Notes: a model not told the origin generated them from the sequence alone. A DNA stretch of 64,000 bases from Oopsacas minuta (GCA_024704765.1 JAKMXF010000033.1:1-64000); one strand, 5' to 3'. Shown: positions 6,834 to 63,570, counted from the first letter of the stretch. Numbers and translations: made by a program.

Positions 6834-9615
6834 ATGATTTCAAGTAAGTTATAAATACAGAAATATTTTTGGTTGCCATAGTAACGTAAAGAATTGTTTG
6901 TTTTGAATTTTGATAAAATAAACAAAATAATTTTGAGTCGGTTTCTGTGGAATTTTGTTATTTATTATTGTTTGTTAATAAATAGCACTTCCGGAGAAAG
7001 AGGAAATCAATAATCTGACAGATCTGGGATCCCCGGGGGTACAAACAGGCGGGCAAACTTACAGAGACAGCAGTCATTCTCCGGAAATAACAGATGACGT
7101 ATTTAGTCCAAATACTCAACCTCAAGAAAATAGTAAGATATCTTATTTGTTATTATTACTATTGTTATTGTTATTATTATTATTTATAGAAGTTAGCTAT
7201 TCTTATAATGAAATATCGGTTAGTTCCAGTACCAGTTCCAGTCCCAGCGAAACTAGAGAATTCAGTTATTATCAGGGCAGTCACTTCTCAGCCAATCAGA
7301 TTGCCAGGAGTGAGACAGGAGAATCGTGTCAAGATTTTGAAGAAATTATGAAAAAGGTGAGTACCCTAGTTACAGCCTTTTGTAATGGAATGTAACAAGA
7401 ATTAGGTATAATTTGTGTAGACATGACACAATTAGTGTTATCATAACAACCAATTAATCACTTGGAATGTTTATTCTTGGACACAAATATTTTGAAATAT
7501 GAGTCAATTGATTGGTGAATTCCTGCAAATACCAAACACCAAAAACAGTAACCAAGCAAATGATATAAATAGTAAAAAAAACAAATAATTCCAAATAACA
7601 AACATTATCAAATATGTTAATGGTAAGCTATTTGTTGTTATTTACATTTGGAAATTTTATTATTTATTATTTGCATTTTAGGTAGAACAAAGAAATAGCC
7701 AATCAGAGAGTGTCTTCACTGATGGACCAGCTGCACCTACATTTGGCGCTCAAAATCTTGAGCAACAGTCTCTGTCCTCTTTCACTCAGCTGATGAGTGA
7801 ATCATTCAACACCTCATTTGACCTGACAAGTATCTCTGAGAATTCTGGTCAGTTCATCCATCAGAAATCGCCACTGTATCTTGGGACACAAAAGCCAGTG
7901 ACTAGTCCTCCTCTCCCGTCTGCTAGTTTCTACCAGACCCCAGAGACAGAGTCTAGCTCAGACAAGTCCTCTATTCAACCTCCTTTCTATCCCGCACATG
8001 TAGACCCTTCCTGTATGTACTATCCAGGTTAGTTCCGATTAATCAGCTGATTAGCTCTGTATTAACCAATCAAATGCTAGGCTATTGGGCTCCTTACTCC
8101 AGTAAGGATTACATAAACAGACTCTATTACGCCAGGAGGTACGCCCCCTATCAGCAGAAGTCCTCCTCTACCTCCACACACCCTTATGCCTTCTCTAAGC
8201 CTAGCACTCCTAACGGATCCACATCCTCATTTTCCAGCTACCCCACAACACCCACGATATACCCAGCCTCTCTAAACGGGTCCTCCAGCTCATTCGACGG
8301 TGCAGGAATGTCTCTGGGGGCGGGACACTACGGGAGTACTAGCAGTTTATCACCTGTAGAGAGTCCTGTATCAGCTGGGTATGTAAGCAAGAGGAAATCT
8401 GGTAGAAGGAAGAAAAGGAGTCAACCAATCACCGCCAGTGTGGAGCCTCATACTACGGTATGTTACACATATTTGTGGTTGCTAGGGAGTAATATATTAT
8501 ATACATATTGTTCTAGAGAGTGTTTGTGTGGGATCTAGACGAGACTAGCATAATATTGATGTCACTATTGAATGGAATGTTTGCTGGGAAGTTTAACCAT
8601 GATTCTGACACCTTACAGGAAATTGGTTTATCAATGAGTGATATTATTTATAATTTAATTAACACTCATTTCTTCCACACTGAATTAGAGGTTAGTAGAC
8701 TATTGTAGATAATATTGATCATATGATTAATCCTAACACCTCTCCAGGAATGTGATCAAGTTCATTTTGAAGATGTCTCACTAGAAGATACCGGAATAGA
8801 TTTAAGGTATGCATACATACTTAATCGGTTGCTATAGAAACTAACATGGAATGTATATTTAGTTCTTACGACTTCTCTACGGATGGATTTACTTTCGCAG
8901 AAATTCAGAGTCAGTCTCAGGGACACAAAAACTCTACGAGCGGCACACCTAGCGCCACTTCTAGCACCTCTATCTCCTGCCCTGGGAGTGTCCGTAACAC
9001 ACAGGATTGGTGCAAGAAGCTGGCCTACAGGTATCGGAGGATACAGGAGATTTATTCCAAATACGGATGTGATTTAGAAAGTAAGTAATTTGATTGGTTA
9101 GTATGAATGATACATTTACTATTTGTTCTATTTTAGCACTACTCGGACAGGAGCAGTACACCACCTGGTACCAGCTCCTCTGTAAGCTAGAGAGGATCAC
9201 AGAGCAGTGGGTCAGTCAGGCAAGGAAGTGTCTAATGTTAATACAATCAACACCTGGATATATTAATATTCTTGTTAGCAGTAGTCCACTTATCTTAACT
9301 TTAGGGAAATGTCTGTTGTTTGGATTGAGTCAAGTGTTTCAAGTACAAAATGTATATTCCTCGGATAATACAGGAAAATGTGATGTGTTTGAGAGATTAG
9401 TAAACAGATTTGGAACTAAATGTACATATGTAAGTATAGGAGACTCACATGAGGACGAAGATGCTTCGAAAAAGGTGAGGAATTAATAACATTATTCAGT
9501 GAATTATATTTGTAACATGTTATTCTATTTTTAGCACAATTTCCCATTCTGGCGAGTATCTTCTCAGAACGATTTGATAGCGCTGGAGAGAGCACTACAG
9601 TTACAACATTTATGA
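6834..9615 (+). CDS. EYA1: Eyes absent (EYA) family phosphatase/co-activator, multi-exon
   Basis: S/P/T-rich N-terminal half, then the EYA domain with catalytic FVWDLDET (DxDxT), WCKKLAYRYRRIQEIY, YVSIGDSHEDEDASKK, and end FPFWRVSSQNDLIALERALQLQHL*. The start (ATG ATT TCA A|gtaagt) is inferred. Confidence 0.92.
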
Positions 9616-10727
9616 ATATTTGAGTTATGAATATTTTGATTACAAATTTTTATTTGTAAATTTCCTATTTTGTAAATATCGAAACGCTATTTTGTAAATA
9701 TTTGTGTAAATAAAGAATGTATATTTGAGTTATATAATATTAGGCGGGAAAATAATCAAACAGAAGGTGTGAAAATGATAAAATTAATTAGTAATTTAAC
9801 AATACGCCTCCCTGACAACGTAATTAGGCAATTGTAATGCGTAGTTAGTAAGTAGAATAACAAGATTATAAATTCGAAGACAGAATCATCAGAAATAAGC
9901 AAAATGTAAGAAATAATACTTCCGGTCTATTTTAGTGTAATTATTGGTTGGAGGAATTCAATACACAAATTTGATAAATACTGATATTCGATTGGTCAAA
10001 TACACTCAGTTCTATAAATGCCCGCGTATTTATTTTTAATTCTATAAATAGCACAGAATTTTCAAGCAATATTTCCAATTGAAATAAATTCCTAGATGCT
10101 TTCCTGTTGCTATGCTAGCACGAGCTGCTCCCAGATAGAACAGCCAATCAAATCCGCCCCTTTGAGTGATGAGACAATTAACTTAAGTCCTCCCACGCCA
10201 GATGCTATATGGAACTAACTTATCTGAATATGGAACTAAGAGCTAATATATAAACTCGTCATTTTCATGAGGAATTCTAATTAATCTCAGAAATTAATGG
10301 CTGACTGATCAAATATTTCAACTCAGACTTACTCTAACAAATAAGTAAACAATTAACTATGCTCTAACTAGTAAATAACAACAAATAACAACAGCATATA
10401 CTTAGCAACAACAGAATACAAATGCTGTGAAGTATTGCAACTAGCAAAATGTATAAAATCAAGCTATATACACATACGAATTCTAAAAATATGCTCATTA
10501 TTTGCAACAGCCAGACTTTTCCTTTTTATTAAGAACTAACTCAACGGATTGTTCTGGCTCTTTCTGAGGTGTCTACAGGACATAATGCAATTGGAACCAA
10601 GTACAGGAAGTATAATATATAATTGAATTAAGCTAGATAGTGGATTGACTGGCCCAGATATTCATAAATATAGTGGACATACAAAATACACATACACAAT
10701 AAAGTTAGTTCAAACAAATCTCTCCAA

Positions 10728-11920
10728 TCAGGTGCATTTGCAACCCTTGACCTTTGGTCCATAGTCTCCGTCCTGGTTAGGGAAAGTTGGATTTGAAGGC
10801 GTGTTAGCCATTGGGGTCTGTAGAAATATTCCAGTCATTCCACAGTCTAGCTTAGTAACCATGGATACGTGCGGAATTTTATAAAACAGTGGGTCTATTC
10901 AAGATTTATGAATAGACCCATAGCCCCCCCCCCCTCCATTAGAGGATCAGTTTAGCGGATAATATTTGTCACGTAATACTTACCTTTTGGAGAATTGCTC
11001 TAGCCAGGGTTTCAAACGTCTAAACAAGTAAATAAACAAGTAAACAATATATCAAATAACAAACAAACATAACTCTAACCTGATCAATATTTATGTTAGA
11101 CTTGGCTGAAGTCTCAAAAAACCGAATAGTATACTCGTCAGCAATCTAAACAAACTAATAAATAAATAAACAAACAAACAAACAATATACAAGTAATGAG
11201 CATAATTATGGCATAATTCTAGATAACAACCAATATATGAGAAAGGAATGTAACAAATAAAGAATACCCTCTGTCCCTGATCTTTAGAAATTACTCTCTT
11301 AGTTTCCATATCGCATTTATTAGCTATCAAAGTCTTCTCTACATCTGGAGACGCGTGCTAAACAACAACAATAATAACAACAAACAAACAAACCAACAAA
11401 CAAGCAAGCTCACCGTCTCTATATTATGCAGCCATTTGGCAATGTTATCAAAAGACTTTTGTTGAGTAATGTCATACACCAGGATAATACCCTAACAACG
11501 AATATATAAGATAGGTATGTATGGAATGTTATTAATAAGATAGGAATGTACTAACCATAGCTCCGCGGTAATAAGAGGTTGTTATTGTGTGGAATCTCTC
11601 CTGTCCAGCAGTATCCCTAATGATACAAATAGTTAATATCATCACACCTTTTATGATAATAATCAATTCGAATTTACCATATTTGTAGCTTTATCTTCTT
11701 ACCGTCTAACTCAATAGTCTTGATTTTGAAATCAATACCTATATAAGAAACAAACAAATTAACAAACAAACAAAAGAGTAAACAAACACCTACCAATAGT
11801 AGATATGAATGTGGTATTGAATGCGTCATCAGAGAACCTGAAGAGGACAGAGGTCTTCCCTACCCCTGAGTCCCCAATCAATAAAATCTTGAACAACAGA
11901 TCGTAAGCCTTCTTAGCCAT
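10728..11920 (-). CDS. RAB10: Rab10 small GTPase, multi-exon
   Basis: [57 protein letters not shown] (Rab10-type residues), ANKCDM, and C-terminal prenylation motif GCKCT*. Confidence 0.92.
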
Positions 11921-12546
11921 AACTAATAAATTCTATTCTTAGAAATACAAAGCCATAACATAGCAACCACATAAGACATTAGTTATGTTATCTGAGGGAA
12001 GAAGGAGGTACCCTTCCAGTTATATTTAAGGATACAGCTGTTTATCAGTAACATTAGGGAGGTATCAATCTACACCCATGAGGACGATAGGGACATATAA
12101 CACCCATGGGAAAGGACAAGGAACATTTATTTGTAGTAAATAAGAATAAAATATAAACTATCGCATAGAATAAATGTGTGCATATATATTTATGCAATAA
12201 GATATCACTGAGAGTATTGTATTATCGTCAAAACTGCAACGATATATACTCTGCATTCCTATCTACTATCATGGTAGTCAGGATATACAAATCATTCTTA
12301 TTAACCAATCAATTTCTAGGAAATAATATGGGGATTAATCATATGAATAATACGTATTATCAGAAATATCATAATTAATTAGATGTATTAACACTCACAT
12401 AAAATATCTGAGAGACTAATAGGCCTGATTAGATAAACAAATATTAGCTAATATTTATAGAATACATTATAATAAATCTTGTAAATAACAACAAATTGAA
12501 AATCCATTGTGCAATAGTGTTAGAAATCTATTTTTAGAATTCAAAT

Positions 12547-15500
12547 ATGTCTCAACAGCCGAGGTGAGTCAATACTCTCAAAGTTGATAGGTCAGTTTAT
12601 CTGTGTTCAATAGGTTGTTGGTCAGAGGACCTACGATTGATTTCGACGATGTGACGGCGTCTCCTGAGCCGGAGAAGGACTCAGAGAAGATCCACTTCAT
12701 CCGACACGACACGCGTACTCCATCTCCGACAGGTGACTATTACCTCAGTGATTCTCCAAACCCCAGGCAGAGAGAGTTCTCCCGTATGAAGAAGGGAGAC
12801 GTAGAGCTCCTTCAGATGGTAAATGCTGGATATGCTACAGCCTCTCTTCTAGTAGAGAAAGATAAGGTAACCTAGCGACCAGTATATGTCATCGAATGTT
12901 GTTATTATTTGTATTTAGACATCAGACAAAGGTCTTACAGCTCCAGCTCTTGATCAGTCATCCAGCCCAACACGTTACAAGCGATCAGAAAGATCAGCTG
13001 CTAAAACTATGAGACAGACAAAGGACCAATCATCTGTAGACCAGGTTAGTTACCCGCACATAATATGATAGAGCTAGTCACTGGCGTATCAAGCACCTTT
13101 GGTTCTTGGGGCTGAAAGGGCCCCGTGCACATTTCAGGCCAACTTGAAACTATTAGTCAAAACAAAGCAATAATAATCTATATATTCTGTAAAGATGTGT
13201 TAGATAATCCAAAGACGAATTAATAGAGTATTCAGTATAAGTCTTAGCCAGTTTAGAGAATTTTTGAAACGCCGTCCTTCAAGGAAATTACAGAAAAATT
13301 GCTTATTCGATGTCAAAAATGCGCCCTGGAAATCGAGAATTCAGGGGTGGATTAAGAGATTTCCGACAGAGAGAACTGTTAAAAACCCAAATTGTAGGTC
13401 CGAAACCGTGCAAGTCATTCCGGGAGAAATAGTCCTAAAGAATGTAATGGGAATTTTGGTCTAAAAGTCCAAAAACGGAAATAGTTTTATGGTGTTCATC
13501 TAGAACGTAAGCTCTAATCCTCTCTACGATAATAACAGCTGATATTCATCTTGTACGCCCTTTTGGCACTATAACTATAAGGTTTTGTTAATCTCTCCTA
13601 AATATTATGCACATTCGAACCTAATTGGTCGGACCCGTTTTTTTGGCCCGCCCTGTATGTGAGATGTTTATTTTCCAAATAAGCTTTGAATGTTATATGT
13701 GTAGACATGATCAGTTATATGCTAGATAAACCTTTTATAGTTTAGCGGGTTTGTATAGGAACGCAGTAACTACATCTTGGATCTCAAAAATATATAATAT
13801 AATGCATCTCTCTCAGTCAAGGTTGGCACCTCCCTCTGAGTGGCACCCGGGGTAAACCGCCCGCCCCCAGCCCCCTAAGTACGCCACTGGATCTTGTACA
13901 CATTCCATTTTATCCTTTAGGTTGATACGGTAACAATAATAAATGATTTAGTAAGTTTGTCTCAGAACAGTCCAAGTGGCGCCTCTCCTCTCCACTACGC
14001 TCAAACCTCCAGGAGCTTTTCTACCCACGTTACCGACACCCTGATTGAGGAGTTCAATATTGGTAAGAGTCTTGTTTGTTTGTTTGTTTGTTTGTTTGTT
14101 TGTTTGTTTGTTTATACGTTGTTTAATTGTCAGACATCAACATCACAGACAATGACGGTGACACAGCACTCCACTGGGCTGTGACACATTCACACCTTGA
14201 GAATATAGAGCTGTTAATTTCTAGAGGAGCTAATGAAAATATTTGCAATCAATCAGAAGAGGCGCCGATTCATTTAGCTATTAAAAGTGGAAAAGTAGAT
14301 GTAGCATATATTTTCTTTAGGTTTGTTTGTTTGTTGTTTGTTAGTTAGTTAGTTAGTTAGGTTATTTGTTTATTTATTTGTTTACTTCACAGTCTAAAGT
14401 GTGACCGTCATATCCTATACTCCTACAGAGGTCGTAACTATTTGCATTTAGCTTGCGAAGAGAATAATATAGAAATGGTTAAGCTAATTCTAAAATATTC
14501 CCCTAAGGGCAGACCTGGATCTGATGCCTTGGACCTTCCTGTTCCCCTCGTTACCCTCCTGGATCATGACAACTTAACACCTATACACACAGCTGCTAAG
14601 AAATGTGACTCCGAGGTAATATAACATTCCATCACTCCCTTAGGGTAACTATGCATTTATGCCAGTAATTGAATTAGATTCTGGACCTGTTACTCCATCA
14701 AGTGGATGGTGCTCAGTTGAAGGAGTCTACCCTCCTGTCAGAAAGCAGAGAGGGTTTCACACCTCTCCACTACTCGGTAGACGCGGGTAATCTAAATAAT
14801 GTTAAACTCCTACTCAGACACGGTGCCTCTCCTCTGACAGCTTCAAGACAGCAGCAGATCTCCTCTATACATTTGGCTGCTATTACCAGCAACACGTATA
14901 ATGAAATATTGACTGAGCTTATTATGTGGACACAGGGTAAGTTATATATACACATAAAAGGTGTGAAATTATGAACAATACCCACAGGATATGATCCTAC
15001 AATAGTAGACATCCGGGACTCCCAAGATAGAGCCCCTCTTCACTATGCTGCCACTTATAATCACGTCCAATCAGCTTCTATTCTGCATAACTATGGAGCT
15101 AATCTTAATTCAATTGACAGAGATGGTAACACCCCTCTGATAGTAGCAGCTTCTAAAGGTGCTACTAAAGTGCTACAATTTCTGTTAGATAAGGTAATAT
15201 ATTGCATTCCTATCCTCTCTTACTGTTGCTATGCTGTGTTAATCAGCTGTTTATCAGGGAGCAGATGTTACAGCTCAGAACCATAAGGGGCAGACAGCCC
15301 TTCTGGTATCCATAGAGGAGGGACACTGGAAAACCGCTCGGGAGTTGCTCACGTGTCCGGACGAGGAATCTAAGTCTGTTCTTGTCATAATTCCTGATGA
15401 CACCGGACAGACACCTCTACATGTAATCTGTAAGGGTAGTGGTGATTATAAGACAATGAGTATGCTGCTAGAACTACATGCTGATGTTAATATGCACGAT

Positions 15501-26207: not shown

Positions 26208-26812
26208 ATTTGGGCAGGAGGGGTTAAATAGAGCAAATATGTCTAACTTCCATTTGACCTGGGGGGTCTATGAATTGCCCCATCAGACAGACCAAGTTAG
26301 ACACTAATCAAAAGCAGAATTCCAACCCTCACTCCTAATCCTTGTAGTAAATACACAAATACAAATTATAAGACACAATGAGGAGTGCTCACTCGACATA
26401 ATCACCTTATTAGTGAGTTATTTATAAACACCCGTAGGTAGGGCGTACAGAAACTTCTGGCCAACCCTCAGAGCCCCAAGATCCAATCAATATTGCTATA
26501 AACATCTACAACACCTATCCGATTGGTGACATAAATACACATCCGTATTCTCAGCTAAATACAATACAATTATCTAACTTCATAATAATTATATTTGGTA
26601 TAACTGTAAATAGGATTGTGTATGGGTACAGGTGTCAATAAATTGTGTCTTATAATTTGTATTTGTGTATTTACTACAAGGGTTAGGAGTGAGGGTTGGA
26701 ATTCTGCTTTTGATTAGTGTCTAACTTGGTCTGTCTGATGGGGCAATTCATAGACCCCCTGGTCAAATGGAAGTTAGACCTATATGCTCTATTTAACCCC
26801 TCCTACCCAAAT
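26208..26812. repeat. Long inverted repeat: ~172-bp arms (26208-26379 and 26642-26812) around a 262-bp spacer
   Basis: The arms match by direct comparison with only a handful of substitutions and one 1-nt indel. Weaker similarity continues ~70 bp further outward. Confidence 0.92.
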
Positions 26813-52469: not shown

Positions 52470-54314
52470 TCAAGGATCCCAATCATCAACATTAGGAAAT
52501 ACAGTCTGTGTGTCTGTATTAACAGACTTATTACCGTTACTTGATTCTACAGAGTACTTAGAGTGAAACTTAGGTGTTTGTTGTTGTTTATTAACAGAAT
52601 TCTTGTTACGCTTCGTGTTAGGCTCAGGTTCATAGTAACCAATCTTCCGTTTAGCGTTATAATATTCCTCATATGACATGATATGATATTTGGTATGTAC
52701 ACAGGATGTTCTGAAGTTGAGGAGATCAACTTTCCTCAAAGATTTTTGTAACATTACAAACACGGAGTTATTATGATACCAGAAATTATTCACACGGGTG
52801 AAGGGGGACAGGAGATCAGTTATCTCCTCCTTAGATATTTTGTCACGTGGTGATTTTGTTGAAAAATGGAGGACATTGTCTCTTTGGGGTCTTATATCTC
52901 GCTTGGTTGGGCTAAAATGGAATACACCTTGCATACCCAAGAATATCTCATTCACAAATTTATCGATTTTCACACCTAGCAACAACATAGATCCAAAGAT
53001 ATGTCCTGTCATCATAGCATCATAACCAGCTTCATGTTTATACTCTATACCACCGGGGGTATAGCGGTCAAATTGTGGAGGGAAAGTTATGTTTAAAGGA
53101 AACTTAGCACTGAATAACTCATAAACTGTAGCGAGAGATGATTGGTCAATATGGTCTCTAAATGGGTCGATACAGGCCAAGTATTTAGTGTCAAATATTT
53201 TAGGGAAAAAACTGTGTACCATGGATTTAAAATCGTCCCATTTCTCAGGCAGGGGGCCGTAGAATTGGTTCATTATGTGGAACAAGTCCAGGAATCCGTT
53301 ATGGAAAACTGTACGCTTATTCGACTGAGAGACTAGCTGTAATATTTGGTTAAATGACGTCATTATGACTAGATTATCAAAATTTGATTCAGTCTCATTT
53401 GTATCAGCTGTCAACTCGAGATCTGGTTGGTCAGCTGAGAGAATAGGCTCTTCTGTAGACAGGACTCGTTCCTATAAATACTGGATAATTATTCGTTTAT
53501 TATTAATAAATAAGAAACTGGACTTATGTAACCATGGTAACGTAATTAGTACCTTTGTATGTTCGTGTTCTCCTATTTGTGAGTATATACATCTGTTAAT
53601 TAATTCTAACTCTCTGGAGAGAGCAGGAGTAGGAGTAGGAGATAAGAGAGGTTTTGTCTGTCTAATTAAACTTTTGAGATTCATCATTGAAATGTAAGGA
53701 ATACCAGAATAGATAACTTTATTAAAGTCAAATCTAAAATAGTAAGGAATATCTAAACCGGTACTTGGAGGGACTCTCACGGGATGGCAGATATTTGAAC
53801 GGTAACATATTGAGCCTATACAATTTGAGGATCACGATCGACACATTATGTCCTTAAGTTATGACCCCTGTATATCTATCAACATACTTGTTATCGGCTA
53901 AGAATGTGAGTGTATTAGAATCACATAGAAAAGCAGTATTGAAGTCTTTGCTCTGTTCATGACTGTATGGGAATATATTGAAGTTGAAAGGATAGCATTT
54001 ATACTCTCCAGGCGTCAACAACTCGAAGCAGCATATCCCTACCTAGACAACAAATAAACAAGTAAACATCACTAATTATTGAAACAATTATTAACACCTC
54101 CCCTCTACCCTTTAACCCTTGCCTGTAGCAAAACATACTGTTTGAGATTCTTACGTAATATTTCGTATCTATCTCCGAACTCATCCAAAGGGTTCAGTTT
54201 AAGTTTATTGTAAAGACCAGAGAATTCTGCGTCAATTGCAATGAAATCTGATTGGTTGAGAGCTGATTTAAACAGCTGGAAATTCTCTTTGAAATTTAGT
54301 TTAGTCAAATCCAT
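52470..54314 (-). CDS. PARN: Poly(A)-specific ribonuclease (DEDD/CAF1 family)
   Basis: DFIAIDAEFSGL, YPFNFNIFP, FDFNKVIYSGIPY, VFHNGFLDLFH, IFDTKYLA, KHEAGYDAMMTG, then an RRM-like region. Confidence 0.9.
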
Positions 54315-54495
54315 GCTAACATACTGGAAGGTGTGAAAATGTGAATATCAAGAAATTAAGGCTACAGATCCAACTTAATGGCATTTAACCATACAACAAT
54401 AATATTTGTGTATAGTATATAAAATATGTTCATAAAAAATAGTAAACATCACCAATAAACAAACAAGTAAACATATAAATATAGCTAACACTTCC

Positions 54496-55635
54496 TTATT
54501 TATTCCCAATAAGAGGTTGATACATATGATTATAATGTACACCAGCATGTCTGTTATATGCTCTCCTCCTCTGAAGTAGTCTCCTGACAGCTTTATATAA
54601 TATTGACGCATGGAGGAGGAACATGAAGAATACAGCGAAACATACGAGTGTACTATAGAATATATTATTTAGAGTGAGCACCAGGTCCATTATTTCAGGG
54701 TGCTGGGTATACACATGACTTAACCATGGATAATCTGAGTTGAATAATATGAAATTCAAAGAGCAAGATCTAGTAAACAGAAATCTTATTACCTCCAAAA
54801 TAAATATGAACAAAATCGCAGATAGCCAAAACACCATAGCAAGAACATACAGTATAGCTCCCCATCTGTAATCCTTGCTCATTTGTTGTAATCTCTCATG
54901 TACATATCCTTCTTGTTCAAACCAAGCATCTAATCTCCTCCTCTGTAGCATGACGTATAATTTAGAACTGTATTTATGGAATAAGAATAAATGAATAGGA
55001 AACACGGAAATACACAGAACAAAGGCAAATACCAAAAATGCTCTCCAGTAGATGACGCTAAGCCAGAGGGTAACTAATTGTGTCAGCAACAACACAAACA
55101 TAAACAATTCCCGTTTAGTTAGCTTTATAACACGTTTATCAGCATAAGCATTAGACAGATAGGAAGTAAGGATATGGACCAGGGATGTGTAGGTTAGAAA
55201 TGACGACATTACTGCTGCTATAAAACACCTAATGAACATGTGATGGAATATTGCACTGAAGATTTGGTTATTACCATCGAGAGTACAGTTACCAACCAAT
55301 AGCTTATATGGCTTAAGAAGGTAAAGGCTAACTTCGATAGGTACAATGGCCAAAGTTTGTAATATCTCACAAGCACAAATAGCAGCTATGAATAAGGATT
55401 TGATGTAGTCTACTCTAGCATTTGTTAATTCCTGTTTACACCTTTCATCTGTTTGTTTCTTCAAGTAATGAATCTTCTTACTCAGGCTTCTCAAACGGGA
55501 CAGGAAGTATAGCAACCATATAGCCGCTAGGAATGTTATACCAATCAAGAATATTGAAGAAGACGTTTGAATGAACAAGACTAATCTACCATGATAACCA
55601 GCTATAAAGTAAGACACGTTCTGGAATAAACCCAT
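54496..55635 (-). CDS. Orphan 7-transmembrane protein, copy A (intronless)
   Basis: ~380-aa ORF with seven hydrophobic segments and basic loops; paralog of 61290-62420. First ATG at 55635 (the ORF track starts at a non-ATG codon at 55650). Confidence 0.85.
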   Translation of the reverse strand: MGLFQNVSYFIAGYHGRLVLFIQTSSSIFLIGITFLAAIWLLYFLSRLRSLSKKIHYLKKQTDERCKQELTNARVDYIKSLFIAAICACEILQTLAIVPIEVSLYLLKPYKLLVGNCTLDGNNQIFSAIFHHMFIRCFIAAVMSSFLTYTSLVHILTSYLSNAYADKRVIKLTKRELFMFVLLLTQLVTLWLSVIYWRAFLVFAFVLCISVFPIHLFLFHKYSSKLYVMLQRRRLDAWFEQEGYVHERLQQMSKDYRWGAILYVLAMVFWLSAILFIFILEVIRFLFTRSCSLNFILFNSDYPWLSHVYTQHPEIMDLVLTLNNIFYSTLVCFAVFFMFLLHASILYKAVRRLLQRRRAYNRHAGVHYNHMYQPLIGNK

Positions 55636-56464
55636 TAGAATGAAGCACAAGAAAAGATATTAAAATATCTATATGCATTAGACTATTATATACTAAACGG
55701 GACAGTAATATTAGTAAAAATAATTCCCAATATTGTAATCATAACTTTGTGATATTACCTAATAAGTAATCATTAATTATTACTAATGACACAAGCAGAT
55801 ATATGAACAGTTGATTATTGGATGAGGACAGCATAGTTTCAGAGTTGCCTAGGGCGACACATTTTGAAACAGCCTCAAGGACCAGCTGTTCAATATTCTA
55901 CCAACTAACGGTTCCTAACCTCGGGTCTATACACCCCTTGGTGATCCACACACGACAGCAGGGTGTGTATAATTAATAATATAAACAGCTGTAATATTAC
56001 ACTAATCAGCTGTTTCCTGTACTCTACAAGTATAATTATACATATACAGATGCATTCTAATAATATTAATAAAATGATGTAAGATAATCTGTGATTCCTA
56101 ACAGAATTATTAACAACCATAAGGTGTTACTTTGAGGTATAAGAAGAGATAAAGGATACAGGAGTATACTCGTGTTGTTGGTGTTATGGTAAAATAAACA
56201 ACAACAAATTCTGGAAGCAATTAGACACATTCCACCTCATTTACATCCTCAAAGGAACACAAATTAATGCCAATCAAAGCAGGAATAATTCTGCTTTATT
56301 GTGGACTTTAAAACAAAAGAAATATCAAATACAGAACCCATTGAATGCTATAAACGGATAATACATAGACATTAACAGCCATAGTCTCTACTATACAAGC
56401 TGTATATGTGTTATGTATAAATAGGGAAAATATGAAATTATAACAAATATAATCTTAAAGGGGA

Positions 56465-56574
56465 ATGGCGAATTCTAAAATCCTGCTTGTGACACTATTA
56501 GATGGTAGTGTTATGCAATTTGTAGTTACAAGAAAGACATTCGGTAGAGATATATTGGATCAGGTAAGACATTA

Positions 56575-56606
<32 letters not shown>

Positions 56607-59333
56607 CATTTCTGCCTTGTCTGAGTCTAAATTTATTCTCCTTTGCAAAAACTTCTATAATTTAATTTTGTATACATATACCCGATTTTCACACCTTATC
56701 TCCATCTGTTTATGAGCTAATAACATGTATACAGGTTTGTCAATCTCTGGGTGTATGGGAACAGGACTATTTCTCTCTACAGTATGATAACTTAAGAGGT
56801 GAGAAGAGATGGTTAAATAACAAGAATCCTCTCCTCCCTCAGTTACTAGAAGAGAATATAACAGCTGATACCTTCAAATGTATGTTCAGAGTAAAATTCT
56901 TTGTTCAACAGCAACAAATTCTAATGACACTAACAAGGTTTGTTTACTTGTTTATTGATAATATTTAAATGTGTACATATCAGTAAAATTCCATTCTCTC
57001 ACTTGTCTGACATAAACCACTATTTTAATCAGGAGATAGAACTAACCTCAGAATTATACATATCTTCACATACTTATGGCATAACCAGACGTATGGTAAA
57101 GTAGTTAGTTCCAATTCCAATAGGAACTATATCAATAAGTTCCAAAATCGGTTTTTGATTAATCAGTAATCCTTCCATATATTTGTTATGTAAATATTTA
57201 TGATCATACAACACATTTAAAATCACATATTTGTGAACGAAAATGATAACAAGTAGCTAACATGAGGATGCAATACCACTAGCGACACAATATTGCCATA
57301 ATGCCCGTGTAAGGGTTTGTTGTATTACTTAATGTCTAGCAATTAGTGTAGGATAGCATATTACGTATTGAATTTTATGGAAATCTAATTAGTAAATTAC
57401 CTAAGAAAAGGTGTTAGAATATTAATAACAACTATAACGTAACACAATCTGTAGTTATAAAATTTAATTTTCTTGCTGTCAGTTACACGTATGTAATAAT
57501 AATTAAATCGCCATATGAATAATCGCCATATCTTCTATCAATGTGAGGCCTAATTACAACTCTTAAGTTACAAATATTTGGCTGATAAACAATATACAAA
57601 TTACATATATCTGTTGTTATGACTACAGAGAGGATTATAATCTATAACACCTAGGTGTATAATAATAGATATTATTAGAGATATATCTTATGCAAGGGGT
57701 ACCTTGTACCTGTAGTATCTGTGGTGAATAGGAGAGGTCACACATATATACATATAAGATAACACGTTTTACGTATATTACACATAAGACCGGGATGCTT
57801 CCGAGAAATATGATATATTCCTTGCAGTTAAGAAGTGTCTATGTTGTATTTATGGAAATAATTGTAACCTCTTCACTTAGACATTTATTCTATTTGGATT
57901 TGAAGAAGAAGTTAAAAGATCAAACACTCAGAATACCCCCTCATCACCAGCGGAAAATAAAAATACTCTCTTGTCTAGCTCAAGCAGAGCTGGGAGACTT
58001 CCAACCAGACTGTGATTTAGAAATGTTATACAGGACAGTTGTACCTGGGTACACTGGTATGTATATATTGTAACAGCTTGGATTCCTAATACGAATACTA
58101 TAATATCTGCAATACAGAACCTGTAAACCATATAGCGACACAATTATGACACCTATTGCATCATCAAAACACAGTTTTAAAACAAACACAATTCGTACAA
58201 TCAATTACCTGATAGTTTAGTAACACCCACTGTGACTAGACAATACACATACAGCATATTGTATTACCTGTTAATATAGCCCGCCTAGAAATGGTCAGCA
58301 GTCCCGAGGTGATAGTTATAGGAGGGATGTCTGTATATGTAAATTTAATAGAACATTTGTAATTCTGTGTAGAATCATTATTCGAAGATTTAAAGAAGAA
58401 TCATTCAATGCTTCGGTTAACATCTAAACAAGAAGCAGAGGTGTTATTCCTTACTAAAATATCACAGGTAGTAGAGGAATACGGAACAGACAGACATGAA
58501 GTGTATGCACACGGTAGAAGTGTCATGTCAATGAATATATGTATGGAGGGTGCTACTATTATAATAAAGGAACAACCTGATAGAAGGTGAGTATATACAC
58601 ACATATAGAATTAAGAGATATGTATATTTCAGAATTATTAGGGATAAACTCATATTCTAATTTTAGTAACAAATATATTTTGTTTAGAATTCCATTCTGT
58701 AACTTCATTAGTGCAAGAGTAAATAATAACAATTTACACATGATAGTAGAGGACTTCCCTTACAAACAACTGATACCGGAAATGGATCAAATAAACATAG
58801 AAGCTCCTATAGGACTAAATATGGAGTATAACACCTTGACTGACGTATCGCTACAATTCTTAACAGCTGATCAATGCTGGCACGCTTACAGAGCATTAAC
58901 TGAGAGGATAGTGTTCTATGCTAGGAATAGAGCTGATGATATTGAAGAACCCCATTTCAAATGCCGATGGCATTCATTCGTTGCTAAGGTGAGTTATAAC
59001 TCAGATTTCCCTCTCCAAATGTGAATATTTTCAGACTTTGTTACGACATAAACACAGGTACAACCTAGTAAAGCTACTGCTCTCCGTTTGTATAACTTTG
59101 ATGTAGAACACACGAGTAAGGAGACTTATGAGAATACCTGGAATATCTTAGTTACAGATGTGGGAGAAAGGAATGCAAGCAATAAACGCGTGGTAAGTAA
59201 ATTCATACATTTGATTATAATAATTATAATTCAGTTATTCGATACTAATTTGTGTATTCCTTTGAACTCATTGGTCAGTTTAACCCCTAATTATAACCCG
59301 CCTAATCCTTGTGACACGCTAGACACAGTTTAA
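56465..59333 (+). CDS. MYLIP: MYLIP/IDOL-like FERM-domain protein (3' end uncertain)
   Basis: MANSKILLVTLLDGS..LDQ|VCQSLGVWEQDYFSLQY..WLNNKN..FRVKFFV..RHLFYLDLK..LAQAELGDF..YRALTERIVFY..LYNFDVEHTSKETYE (compare MYLIP YVFDIKRTSKEVYD). Confidence 0.72.
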
Positions 59334-60147
59334 GGTTTCATATAACTGATTTCTATAGTCATGGGTGTGAGTACAGAGTGCAAGGAGTGTTGTGTAGTTA
59401 ATACGCAAGGATTAGTTCATATTCACTCTTGTATAATCTAAGTAAGAAGTGTTAGAAATATGCTATATTTATATTATAAGACTATCTTTAAAACGAAGAG
59501 CTCAGACCCTCGGTTCACTTCGTTACCACGGGAGGTAGTCCATTAGTTGAAGTGTTAACTCAATTAATATATTATATATTTATAGACTTGCAGCATACCC
59601 CATATCAGCTGTTTACCACGTGGGTTGCTAAGGAGAAGAGGACAATCCGAACCATAATTAACATAATAATTCAAGTATTATGATTGTATATTTCAGTTAT
59701 GTTTTGTATAAATAATAAATAAACACATGAATATGGTAACATCTGATGATCAGCCACATGTAAACAGGAACTGACAAATACTAAAGTAGACATATTCACA
59801 GCTGCCATTTGTGTCACTAAATGCCAAAGCTGTTTCTTCATAACAACGAGTATGGTTGTCAATTATTTCATACCGAATAGTCCCCGAGAGCATTCGATAG
59901 AGAATTTAATTATCACTGTGGTGACAGTTATTCTGTTTCGATTGATATACAAACAACAACAGATGAGGAGTCAAGGAAGGGTCTCTACGGTCCAGTGGTT
60001 ATGTAGAAGGAGAACATACTGTTTTCATTTGTAGCAGTATATGATTATGTCATAAATATATCATATGCAATACCATAAGGGTACACATATGATTATACGT
60101 CATAACTACATTGTCTGTGTAACCATAGTAACACTCAGGCATGTATT

Positions 60148-61155
60148 ATGCTCACAGATATATATCGCAAAAGTAATCATGAAGTAAATAATCCTAAAAT
60201 GGCAGCAGAGTTTGTAAAAGGTAATTTTTCTGAGAATTATATTTTGGGGAAATCTCTCGGTAAAGGGAACTGCGGGTTTGTATACGAATGCACTGAACTA
60301 GAGACCAAACGAATATTTGCAGTGAAATTCGTTGCTAAGGGAAATGGTAGCACTTCAAAACAGCTGAGAGAGCTTTCAATGGAAATTAGAATTCTGAAGT
60401 TAGTACAACACCCTAATATAGTACAACTATATGACGTATATGAGAGTATTAAGGAGCTACACTTAATCACAGAGTTATTATCAGGAGGGAGTCTTGTAGA
60501 TTATCTTACAGAAAAAGAATACTTTACTGAAAGAGAATCAGCTGTCTACATCCATCAGCTGGTGTCTACACTCTCTTACTTACACTCTAACCAAATAGTA
60601 CACCAGGATATCAAACTTGATAATATTGTTATCAATAACCGTAACGAACAGCTGAGTATTAAAATCATAGATTTTGGTATAGCTCGACTATGCAATGGAT
60701 CTTTAGAATATCTGTCCGTAGAAGGTACAACTATATACTCACCCCCGGAAGTGTTAAGCTATGAAGTAACTGATTATTCACGTGACATGTGGTCTGTTGG
60801 TGTATGTACATATACACTGTTAAGTGGATACTTCCCTTTTGAGAGTGAAACTGACTCTAAGTTAATGCAAGAAATAATAAAAATGAATTACGAATTCACA
60901 GAGGAATTCGAATATTTGAGTAAAGAGGTCGTTGACTTTATTAGAAATCTTCTCAAACGGGAAAGGAAAGACAGACTGAGTGCTAAATCGGCATTGGAAC
61001 ACCCGTGGCTAAGAAACATCGAATATATCCCAGAGACAAAGATAGACACAAATCGAATAAAGAAACTGAGAGCTAAGATGAGATGGAAATCCTCGTACAC
61101 AGCTTTATCTGTCGCTATTACATTGAAGAGACAAAGAGAATATTCCTTACAGTAG
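60148..61155 (+). CDS. CAMK-group Ser/Thr kinase, DAPK/MLCK-like, intronless
   Basis: GKGNCG loop, AVK, HPNIVQL, HQDIKLDN, DFG, GT..Y.PPE, DMWSVGV, then a basic amphipathic KKLRAKMRWKS segment resembling a calmodulin-binding regulatory helix. Confidence 0.88.
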   Translation: MLTDIYRKSNHEVNNPKMAAEFVKGNFSENYILGKSLGKGNCGFVYECTELETKRIFAVKFVAKGNGSTSKQLRELSMEIRILKLVQHPNIVQLYDVYESIKELHLITELLSGGSLVDYLTEKEYFTERESAVYIHQLVSTLSYLHSNQIVHQDIKLDNIVINNRNEQLSIKIIDFGIARLCNGSLEYLSVEGTTIYSPPEVLSYEVTDYSRDMWSVGVCTYTLLSGYFPFESETDSKLMQEIIKMNYEFTEEFEYLSKEVVDFIRNLLKRERKDRLSAKSALEHPWLRNIEYIPETKIDTNRIKKLRAKMRWKSSYTALSVAITLKRQREYSLQ

Positions 61156-61289
61156 TATACACGATGTGTGTGAATTTATGTGTATTTATGTAGAATATAT
61201 TGTCATTAGTAAGTTTAATAAACAAAATCAAAGCAAATAAGCAAATCTACAAACAAGCAAGTAAACATATAAATATAGCTAACACCTCC

Positions 61290-62420
61290 TTATTTATTCC
61301 CAATAAGAGGTTGATACATATGATTATAATGTATACCAGCATGTCTGTTATATGCTCTCCTCCTCTGAAGTAGTCTCCTGACAGCTTTATATAATATTGA
61401 CGCATGGAGGAGGAACATGAAGAATACAGCGAATACAGTCAGAGAATTAAATAAAAACCTCTCCAAAATAAGGGAAGTTACAGCGATTGCTGTTTGGTGT
61501 TTTGTGAAGAAAGGGGTTGACCATTGAGATTGCGTATTAATCAGCTGTTTAACTTTGCAAGGGTATGCAAGTAGTAATCTGATTAGCGAGATTATAACAA
61601 ATCCCGTTAACACAATACCAAAAAGGACAGTAGAGATGGTGTATAGTAATGTACCATGTTTATAATCATTACGCATCTGTTCTAAGTTCTTATAGCTATG
61701 TATGTCTTCAAACCAAGCATCTAGTGCTCTCCTCTTAATATGAGAATACAGCTTACGACTGTACTTTATGTAAAAGAATAAATGAATTGGGATTATAGAT
61801 ATTATTACAAACGTTAAGACAAAGATAAATACTCTCCACGAGTACACGCTAAGCCAGAGGATTACTAATTGTGTCAACAACAACACAAACATAAACAATT
61901 CCCGTTTAGTTAGCTTTATAACACGTTTATCAGCATAAGCATTAGACAGATAGGAAGTAAGGATATGGACCAGGGACATATAAAGAAGCATGGAAGATAT
62001 TTCTAATGCAAAGAGACCTCTAGCTGCTGTGAAGTCTTGAATATATTCAAAGAAACGATTCCAAGTACAATTTGAATTATTGGGATCTGGGAGTACAAAT
62101 CTGGCCACTCCTAATTCAGTAGAGATTGTCATAATTAATAGCCAAGATTGTAATATCTCACAAGCACAAATAGCAGCTATGAATAAGGATTTGATGTAGT
62201 CTACTCTAGCATTTGTTAATTCCTGTTTACACCTTTCATCTGTTTGTTTCTTCAAGTAATGAATCTTCTTACTCAGGCTTCTCAAACGGGACAGGAAGTA
62301 TAGCAACCATATAGCCGCTAGGAATGCTATACCAATATCTAAGAAGGATATTGATCCAATACTTATGTAGACGAATATTTCAGAAAGGCCTTTATGCTCA
62401 CGAAGAATCGAAAAAAACAT
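61290..62420 (-). CDS. Orphan 7-transmembrane protein, copy B (intronless)
   Basis: 376-aa ORF, collinear with copy A. Confidence 0.85.
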   Translation of the reverse strand: MFFSILREHKGLSEIFVYISIGSISFLDIGIAFLAAIWLLYFLSRLRSLSKKIHYLKKQTDERCKQELTNARVDYIKSLFIAAICACEILQSWLLIMTISTELGVARFVLPDPNNSNCTWNRFFEYIQDFTAARGLFALEISSMLLYMSLVHILTSYLSNAYADKRVIKLTKRELFMFVLLLTQLVILWLSVYSWRVFIFVLTFVIISIIPIHLFFYIKYSRKLYSHIKRRALDAWFEDIHSYKNLEQMRNDYKHGTLLYTISTVLFGIVLTGFVIISLIRLLLAYPCKVKQLINTQSQWSTPFFTKHQTAIAVTSLILERFLFNSLTVFAVFFMFLLHASILYKAVRRLLQRRRAYNRHAGIHYNHMYQPLIGNK

Positions 62421-62717
62421 AATTTAGAGTTCTAAACGATTTTACCGTATTTATACCCAATAATTACAGAATTCATTATTATTTGGTGATATTACTCATA
62501 TTATTTGCAGAGATTATCCCCTGTCTGCAATATTACACAATCACATCTTTACTCATAGGATAATATAGCTATTGATTATATTAGCCTGTAATTAGTATGA
62601 CGTAGCTATAATTCTACATGAATCACCAGATTTATAGTATTATGCAGGAATAATGAGACAAAGAGGATAATAATGGTAATCTCCCAGGGAATAATTGCGA
62701 GTTTTAGGCTTGATATA

Positions 62718-62965
62718 CACTGCCTGGCCAAAAGTATTGGAACACCCTGCCACAATTAATACTTGAAACAAAGGGTATTCTACCATAGTTGTATAAGCTA
62801 AAGATGATTACAAAAAGTGTTGAACATAAATATATCGTAAAACGAATGATAACAAGCTATTGTTCTACTTTCTGGAATATCCATAGAATCTTTCAACATA
62901 TTCTCATCTAATGCCACTTGTGCACAAGTTGTAAACAGTGTTCCAATACTTTTGGCCAGGCAGTG
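62718..62965. mobile_element. Tc1-like MITE, 248 bp
   Basis: Perfect 28-bp TIRs CACTGCCTGGCCAAAAGTATTGGAACAC / GTGTTCCAATACTTTTGGCCAGGCAGTG, flanked by TA on both sides. Confidence 0.92.
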
Positions 62966-63570
62966 TAGCATTCCTAGCGGCTATATGGTTGCTATACTCC
63001 GTGTCTCGTGTTACTTAAATATCTTGGATCAGCTGGTATTTTAATTAATATGTTACGCATGGTTATAATGGAGGTAGAGAGAGAGAGAGACAATTATTCG
63101 AGGGGACTAAATAATGGACAAAAATTCATAATTAGCAAAGTCACTTAATTCCACGTTTCGTCACATTTCGACGAGACATGACACTTGTCTACCCTTGTAA
63201 AATATAATCCACATATCCTATCAAAACATTACAGTAAATTAGATACCATATTTTTGAATAAAATTCACATAATAAGAATAACAATAATCCACAGTACATA
63301 GCTAATAATATTTGGAGAGGATTGTCTTTAAAGAATTGTGTCACGGGGACACTATTAGACAAGAGCTAGTTATGTAAAATAATTAAAACAGCTGTCTGAA
63401 TAGGGAGAAGTGAAGAGGGTGTCATATCCAGCTGGCTTCTGTAAACAAGCAAACAAATAAACAAGCAAACAACAAATACAAACTATCATAACAACTGACT
63501 ATACACACAATAATGTATAATATAATTGACATACAACTGTACTCCCGTATCTACCAGCAGGCCCATGCGG

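Follow-up and report, generated by a model that had tools for sequence, protein, structure and literature searches.

Kruithof et al. (2007; PMC2077338) have reported lineage-specific, independent gene conversions between TLR1 and TLR6 in mammals, in which one region that includes the transmembrane and intracellular signalling domain is near-identical in the DNA of the two paralogs and the ligand-binding part has diverged. The authors interpreted this pattern as co-evolution with shared partners (PMC2077338). For the clustered protocadherins of teleosts, Yu et al. (2007; PMC1852091), referring to Noonan et al. (2004), describe an identity of >99% in one region, including synonymous sites. The same paper describes the conversion as lineage- and subcluster-specific, with the 3' ectodomain of the variable exons homogenised and the GC content at third codon positions (GC3) raised (PMC1852091). 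The present analysis concerns two neighbouring genes, A and B, of the glass sponge Oopsacas minuta, located in a stretch of 64,000 nucleotides (GCA_024704765.1, JAKMXF010000033.1:1-64000; this whole stretch is called the window) and encoding putative seven-transmembrane (7TM) receptors. Genes A and B are probably old tandem paralogs, the signalling face of which is kept in concerted evolution by short-tract interlocus gene conversion, with the ligand-facing side free to diverge.

Both genes are uninterrupted open reading frames (ORFs) on the minus strand at a distance of 6.8 kb, and their proteins are 59% identical overall. Three blocks in them are almost identical in DNA. The genes and blocks are as follows (TM, transmembrane helix; ICL and ECL, intracellular and extracellular loop; GPCR, G-protein-coupled receptor).

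54496-55635, minus strand: gene A, intronless ORF of 379 amino acids (P0002) from the ATG at 55635; orphan protein with a predicted GPCR fold
61290-62420, minus strand: gene B, intronless ORF of 376 amino acids (P0001); paralog of A
55353-55545, minus strand: block 1 in A, pairing with 62144-62336 in B; inner TM1, long helical ICL1 and inner TM2
62144-62336, minus strand: block 1 in B, partner of 55353-55545 in A
55055-55185, minus strand: block 2 in A, pairing with 61846-61976 in B; inner end of TM3, ICL2 and whole TM4
61846-61976, minus strand: block 2 in B, partner of 55055-55185 in A
54457-54639, minus strand: block 3 in A, pairing with 61251-61433 in B; inner TM7, C-tail, stop codon and 39 nt of 3' flank
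61251-61433, minus strand: block 3 in B, partner of 54457-54639 in A

With a TTG start, the ORF of gene A spans 54496-55650 and encodes 384 amino acids. The blocks were recovered by a repeat finder and by direct comparison of A and B. A preliminary description of this DNA had given them 1 mismatch in 189 nt, 3 in 131 nt and 2 in 176 nt, and both coordinates and counts were reproduced exactly. The maximal tract of block 1 is 193 nt with 2 mismatches, around a core of 189 nt with 1 mismatch (55357-55545 in A and 62148-62336 in B). In block 2 (131 nt) all 3 mismatches fall in the first 32 nt and the remaining 99 nt are identical; in A this block is surrounded by a halo of 85% identity (55036-55231). 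Block 3, which continues 39 nt beyond the stop codon, has a maximal tract of 183 nt with 3 mismatches, including 176 nt with 2 mismatches (54464-54639 in A and 61258-61433 in B). Just outside each block the identity of A and B in DNA drops to chance level, and the intergenic flanks of the two genes have no residual homology.

The two versions were also followed in reads. Four public runs, all from one sample and kept as contigs of k=31, were compared with positions 56701-62700, and 74-96% of the 31-mers sampled from the two gene regions are present in the four runs. The read contigs fork exactly at the block edges 61251, 61433, 61846 and 62336. All four runs include a contig with a diverged 167-nt segment of the same length between B's blocks 2 and 1, which is A's version, and other contigs have B's own variable segment at this place. 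Alternative letters in the reads at 61286, 61334 and 61877 are exactly the variants of the A copy. In the reads, a single block sequence is thus bordered by either of two variable versions.

Synonymous divergence (dS, estimated by the method of Nei and Gojobori, NG86) is 0, 0.10 and 0 in blocks 1, 2 and 3 (for block 3, in its coding part) and lies between 1.5 and infinity in every other segment. Where A and B encode the same amino acid, the codons differ at 3 of 146 places within the blocks and at 41 of 65 elsewhere (Fisher p=4e-23). Uninterrupted identity extends over 179, 99 and 99 nt in the longest runs, whereas shuffling the differing sites 10,000 times gave runs of ~17 nt (p<1e-4). Between A and B the protein sequence of ICL3 is conserved (proportion of nonsynonymous differences, pN, 0.27) and its synonymous sites are saturated (proportion of synonymous differences, pS, 0.65), so that this loop is an internal control for purifying selection alone, and selection alone cannot explain the blocks. 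The preliminary description had argued that purifying selection alone cannot keep synonymous sites identical, and it was right, with dS of 0-0.1 inside the blocks, saturation outside them and, as described below, saturation of the blocks themselves between genomes.

A word-indexed search of 5.8 billion proteins has yielded 27 relatives with 35-58% identity, and an exhaustive comparison of the family profile with 1.84 billion representatives gave no more than 72 matches at E<1e-3; the family is small. The named members are a transcript of the glass sponge Vazella pourtalesii, a transcriptome sequence, and a protein of Oopsacas minuta. Other members come from metagenome-type assemblies in ENA with contig names that carry coverage tags of 256-321x. 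The family is apparently restricted to glass sponges. In three related genomes the family genes are intronless and are arranged in tandem arrays, and copy number is 2 close copies here versus at least 8 called genes in the array L001.

The mosaic recurs in these relatives. In three other genomes, diverged paralogs with pS of 0.6-0.9 in the variable parts show pS of 0-0.2 in differing subsets of the cytoplasmic blocks. In ERZ25072730, pS is 0-0.2 in ICL1 and ICL3, and 0.6-0.9 in the variable parts and the C-tail. One pair in ERZ25072740 shows pS of 0-0.08 in ICL2/TM4, TM5 and ICL3, and 0.88 in the C-tail. The parts homogenised between Z_295 and Z_10001 are ICL2/TM5/ICL3, and in the young L001 array pS is 0.04-0.09 in the blocks versus 0.21-0.25 in the variable parts. 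Different subsets of blocks are homogenised in each genome; these events are independent, and their recurrence shows a process that is still going on in the family. With four genomes showing it, the mosaic is a family-wide pattern and not a one-off. Between genomes the same blocks have pS of 0.57-0.85 (minimum 0.44), as high as that of the variable parts, and pN of 0.18-0.38. Since the blocks are synonymously saturated between genomes, their nucleotides are not constrained as such, and their identity is a within-genome property, that is, concerted evolution. Patchwork gene conversion, which the preliminary description had proposed, is the best explanation for the dS contrast within the genome together with the saturation of the same blocks between genomes.

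Trees built separately from the blocks and from the rest of the genes point in the same direction. The blocks tree joins A and B as sisters (99), separated by a path of 0.046, whereas in the tree of the remaining segments their terminal branches measure 1.76 and 1.85 substitutions per site, a contrast in branch length of ~80-fold. In the non-block segments A and B are as distant from each other as either is from genes of other genomes. For the family member P0004, the blocks tree supports a clade of genome-mates, and this clade is rejected by the non-block data (approximately unbiased (AU) test, p-AU 0.026; groups chosen after seeing the trees).

The proteins had been called orphans, and no scanned family member matches Pfam: there was no match above noise for A, B, 24 other members and 10 distant members. 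A profile search of PDB sequences yielded no GPCR and nothing meaningful. At the level of structure, an AlphaFold model of B based on a family alignment of 26 sequences has seven long helices, with a mean local confidence (pLDDT) of 83 and a predicted template modelling score (pTM) of 0.83. A structure search independent of Foldseek, against 48,161 PDB representatives, returned GPCRs of classes A, B, F, T and adhesion as all of its top 50 matches with Z of 15-17. Foldseek E-values are weak by themselves (~0.03); after re-alignment, the best of the Foldseek matches is a class T receptor (7xp6), with Z 18.7 over 265 residues. As judged from the model, the A and B proteins have the GPCR fold, with seven helices in the GPCR arrangement. 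Positive-inside counts and sequons predict an N-out, C-in topology: B has 32 lysines and arginines in ICL1, ICL2, ICL3 and the C-tail versus 9 in the N-terminus and ECLs, and N-glycosylation sequons are confined to the N-terminus and ECL1. The 7TM, N-out arrangement read earlier from the DNA thus agrees with the AlphaFold model, the structural matches to GPCRs and the lysine and arginine counts. A feature and shape search of the ESM Atlas gave only other orphan 7TM families (THH1/TOM1, GPR137, PRRT) with lead-level scores and was not used for classification. The distant Oopsacas paralog P0061 (KAI6657932.1, GCA_024704765.1) carries the PROSITE-based UniProt label 'GPCR family 1 profile'. This protein has 383 amino acids and is encoded by a single intronless 7TM gene at L005:10001-11152, enclosed by a called zinc-finger gene (9356-11505); the locus was examined for an array with the same mosaic and has this single gene, a further case of nesting in a compact genome.

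Conservation in the family is concentrated on the inner side. Among the invariant columns of the family alignment, 36 of 37 lie in inner helix halves, cytoplasmic loops or the C-tail, and R134 is the only one on the outer side. The constant blocks had been equated with the cytoplasmic face. They do consist essentially of inner-leaflet and cytoplasmic parts, and the equation is only approximately right because block 2 includes all of TM4. ICL1 is a long helical hairpin of ~30 residues with an invariant LKKQ..ER...L.NA.V motif, and a C-terminal PL(I/L) motif is also invariant. In the model TM5, TM6 and TM7 reach far into the cytoplasm, and ECL2 is nearly absent. Eight G-alpha subunits have been reported from Oopsacas minuta (PMC10280926).

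One of the four runs, X4, is RNA-seq-like, with five GT..AG joints between 56935 and 59585, exons covered at depths of 350-2200 and introns at a baseline of 40-50. Gene B is probably transcribed because its specific segment 61501-61700 has a depth of 293 in this run, versus that intron baseline. The joints in X4 (56935>57879, 58055>58372, 58584>58686, 58986>59056 and 59191>59585) describe a spliced plus-strand transcript upstream of a kinase ORF that lies between A and B; the transcript could be a separate gene or the 5' exons of the kinase gene. Two differences between reads and assembly were also observed. Position 62107, the middle base of a codon in the variable ECL1 segment of B, is G in 3 of 4 runs and A in the assembly, and run X4 holds a variant of A's N-terminal flank (beyond 62336) in which 2 of 8 first letters are unlike the version of X1 and X2. 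The probable source assembly, of DNA from non-clonal specimens, was a SPAdes hybrid (k up to 99) treated with Pilon and GapFiller (PMC10280926); its G+C is 36%, and that of the window about 36-37%. Because the specimens were non-clonal, the variants at 62107 and in the A flank are hints of allelic variation in the variable parts.

For the conversion reading, the following course of events may be proposed. Short-tract interlocus conversion (about 100-190 bp) would recently have overwritten three segments of the old A/B pair. The placement of the tracts could have two causes that would reinforce each other. The mechanical cause would be strong protein constraint, which leaves enough identity in the blocks to seed strand invasion; every conversion would renew this identity, and the ~50% mismatched neighbouring DNA would halt heteroduplex extension. 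The selective cause would be the removal of conversions that overwrite the outward-facing pocket, as these would destroy specificity. Homogenisation of the cytoplasmic face could be neutral, or could help this face to co-evolve with intracellular partners that the paralogs share. In the larger arrays of related species, unequal crossing-over additionally shuffles the variable halves; the hybrid gene of the array L001 and the omega values of that array, both given below, speak for this reading as well.

Several observations weigh against this reading. Conversion is deduced from the sequence pattern, which gives no donor direction. A total of six mismatches does not suffice to tell the three tracts apart in age, and one repair event with template switches could account for all three tracts of A and B. 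GC3 in the window is 0.29-0.41 in the blocks and 0.31-0.42 in the variable parts, with no clear rise in the blocks; in genomes X and Z, some genes do have cytoplasmic blocks with a raised GC3. The monophyly of A and B in the non-block data is not rejected (AU test, p-AU 0.56), so that the discordance of A and B lies in branch length and not in topology; a claim of separate orthologues of A and of B in other genomes was dropped for this reason (p 0.56). The orthologue pairing P0004+P0018 is not significantly rejected by the blocks data (p 0.2; groups chosen post hoc). With k=31 contigs from one sample, the variable segments are not phasable across the blocks, and polishing with Pilon could have erased a few true differences within them. 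As to the signalling side of the argument, the class-A motifs E/DRY (end of TM3), CWxP (TM6) and NPxxY (TM7) were not seen in the family alignment, and both receptor function and G-protein coupling are putative.

Of the rival explanations, the one that survives best is a dedicated variable-receptor system, in which the blocks would be selected recombination sites for outward-facing cassettes of allorecognition, immune or chemosensory receptors and the signalling face would be matched to a linked partner, for example a kinase. It is considered unlikely. A more particular version of it, a glass-sponge GPCR-like repertoire, is likewise unlikely; in it, recombination at the blocks would both shuffle the fast-evolving outward segments and hold all copies in step with one signalling partner, for which the syntenic CaMK-like kinase is a possible candidate. 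The evidence that bears on both comes from the array L001 and from the surroundings of A and B. In L001, gene 12621-13793 resembles its two neighbours in turn: over its 5' third it shares 94-100% identity with the one downstream (13990-15108) and over the remainder 96-100% with the one upstream (11323-12435), and where the two parts meet, in ECL1, 18 codons are duplicated. It has exactly the structure that unequal crossing-over between these neighbours would give, a hybrid that joins the variable halves of the two. Identity to the nearest paralog also switches along other L001 genes. For seven young L001 paralogs, the maximum-likelihood ratio of nonsynonymous to synonymous rates (omega) was estimated at 1.10-1.21 for the variable segments, with 1.17 as one of the estimates, and at 0.43 for the cytoplasmic ones; all ORFs are intact. 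Values of ~1.2 would fit diversifying selection at some of the sites and would also fit relaxed constraint. The neighbouring features are as follows.

60148-61155, plus strand: CaMK-like Ser/Thr kinase between A and B; an orthologue adjoins the family arrays in three other genomes
59759-59884, plus strand: decayed relic of the ICL1-TM2 part, reading CKQELTNTKVD...; transcribed sequence upstream of the kinase ATG
62941-63012, plus strand: decayed relic of the TM1/ICL1 part, reading AFLAAIWLLYSVSR and then a stop; inverted, ~530 nt upstream of B
52470-53414, minus strand: PARN-like CAF1 ribonuclease exon next to A; a family member in a related genome has this neighbour too

The kinase is represented in NCBI nr and has a basic RWK-type tail and 55% protein identity to its copy in L004, with synonymous sites saturated between genomes; the copies elsewhere are at L001:7210-8154, L003:2576-3544 and L004:3462-4478. 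This conserved linkage speaks for the variable-receptor system, as do the mosaic repeated in four genomes, the identity switching and hybrid gene in L001, the omega of ~1.2 with ORFs all intact, and the hints of variants in the reads (62107 A>G; A flank in X4). The linkage may be functional or merely conserved microsynteny, however, and the omega values leave room for relaxed constraint. Against the system stands the small number of copies. No third close paralog from Oopsacas minuta was found in the search of 5.8 billion proteins, and no donor cassettes for the variable segments were found in the window, where the only extras are the two relics of at most 50 amino acids, both of conserved parts. 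The relic at 59759-59884 is on the strand opposite to A and B, in the last transcribed part of the 56935-59585 transcript. In the relic at 62941-63012, 47 nt match block 1 with 89% identity and lie inverted to B's copy of the block, so that the two make up a short and imperfect inverted repeat; the relic may be what is left of a duplicate in inverted orientation. The preliminary description had offered cassette exchange alongside gene conversion, and exchange from a silent donor archive is not borne out, with two close copies and two tiny relics in this genome and no archive in the window or in the protein search. A chemosensory, immune or allorecognition role of the family, also raised there, is speculation. 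Elsewhere in the window, an inverted repeat of 118 nt with 99% identity (26262-26379 and 26642-26759), with flanking 69-nt arms at 88%, shows a conversion-like signature of its own.

An assembly or polishing artefact, that is, a collapse of paralogs in the de Bruijn graph or the action of Pilon with mis-mapped reads, is very improbable. The tools used (SPAdes with k up to 99, Pilon, GapFiller), the non-clonal DNA (PMC10280926) and the origin of all four runs from one sample would make such an error conceivable. The strongest counter-argument is that the same mosaic is present in three independently assembled genomes with coverage tags of 256-321x. The read contigs include the junctions on both sides of both variable versions, 90-96% of the sampled 31-mers of both genes are found in the runs, and paralog-specific mismatches persist inside the blocks.

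Just as little probability is given to a very recent duplication, after which the variable segments would have been hypermutated or placed under extreme positive selection and the blocks would be the unchanged original. The variable regions of the family evolve fast, and the non-block monophyly of A and B that the AU test leaves standing would suit this view. Synonymous sites are nevertheless saturated outside the blocks, even in the protein-conserved ICL3, which selection on the protein cannot yield. The flanking intergenic DNA lacks residual homology, the non-block distance between A and B equals that to the genes of other genomes, and the subsets of homogenised blocks differ among genomes. 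The least probable explanation of all is a nucleotide-level constraint on the blocks (RNA structure, an antisense transcript or an embedded regulatory element), which the reach of block 3 into the 3' flank might suggest and which is contradicted by the between-genome pS of the blocks, like that of the remainder of the gene, and by a set of homogenised blocks that varies by genome.

With short-tract conversion between old paralogs as the preferred explanation, and the only one in accord with all of these data, the locus is of interest in several respects. Within a single gene of 1.1 kb, segments with saturated dS adjoin three tracts (100-190 bp) in which dS is close to 0, and four genomes show this contrast, each with tracts of its own. 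For such families, trees and dN/dS computed over whole genes will mislead, and each segment has to be analysed separately. The family is undescribed, and its predicted GPCR fold, extended conserved cytoplasmic face and kinase linkage make it a candidate for expression studies and for ligand and partner screens, in a group of animals whose signalling is poorly understood. If the variable-repertoire reading were true, it would mean germline-encoded recognition of self and non-self, of symbionts or of chemicals in a syncytial, nerveless animal.

Compared with known systems, A and B are most like TLR1 and TLR6, which are also tandem receptor paralogs with a signalling region homogenised at the DNA level and a diverged ligand part. 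In TLR1 and TLR6, one contiguous region of ~300 amino acids of a single-pass LRR/TIR receptor is affected, whereas in A and B three short tracts are interleaved within one 7TM domain; the function and partners of TLR1 and TLR6 are known, whereas A and B are putative receptors. The clustered protocadherins resemble A and B in being tandem single-exon units of cell-surface receptors that are near-identical in one region and differ elsewhere. In protocadherins the 3' ectodomain is homogenised and GC3 is raised, whereas in A and B it is the inner and cytoplasmic face without a clear rise in GC3, in another fold and another phylum.

In fold, A and B resemble known GPCRs, with seven predicted helices, an N-out/C-in orientation and Z of 15-19 over ~250-285 residues to TAS2R46, FZD7, SMO, NTSR1 and GPR35, among others; the 'GPCR family 1 profile' label of the distant paralog P0061 is a further link. 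They are unlike known GPCRs in having no sequence match in Pfam or PDB, no class-A motifs seen in the alignment, an ICL1 hairpin of ~30 residues, long cytoplasmic extensions of TM5, TM6 and TM7, a nearly absent ECL2 and the invariant C-terminal PL(I/L) motif. Arrays of chemoreceptor GPCRs, such as the OR, TAS2R and V1R genes of vertebrates and the serpentine receptors of nematodes, evolve by birth-and-death, unequal crossing-over and conversion. The A/B family shares with them intronless genes in tandem, a variable outer pocket, a conserved inner half and a copy number that varies between relatives; it differs in having no sequence relationship to them and in an unusually sharp contrast of homogenised and diverged parts, and a chemosensory role would be an analogy. 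In programmed cassette variation (VSG, vlsE/pilE, VLR), a silent archive of donors feeds an expressed gene, whereas for A and B no donor pool was found in the window or in the protein search. Overall, the process is already known from TLR1/TLR6, the protocadherins and other families, and what genes A and B add is a further, very clear case of it, not a new mechanism.

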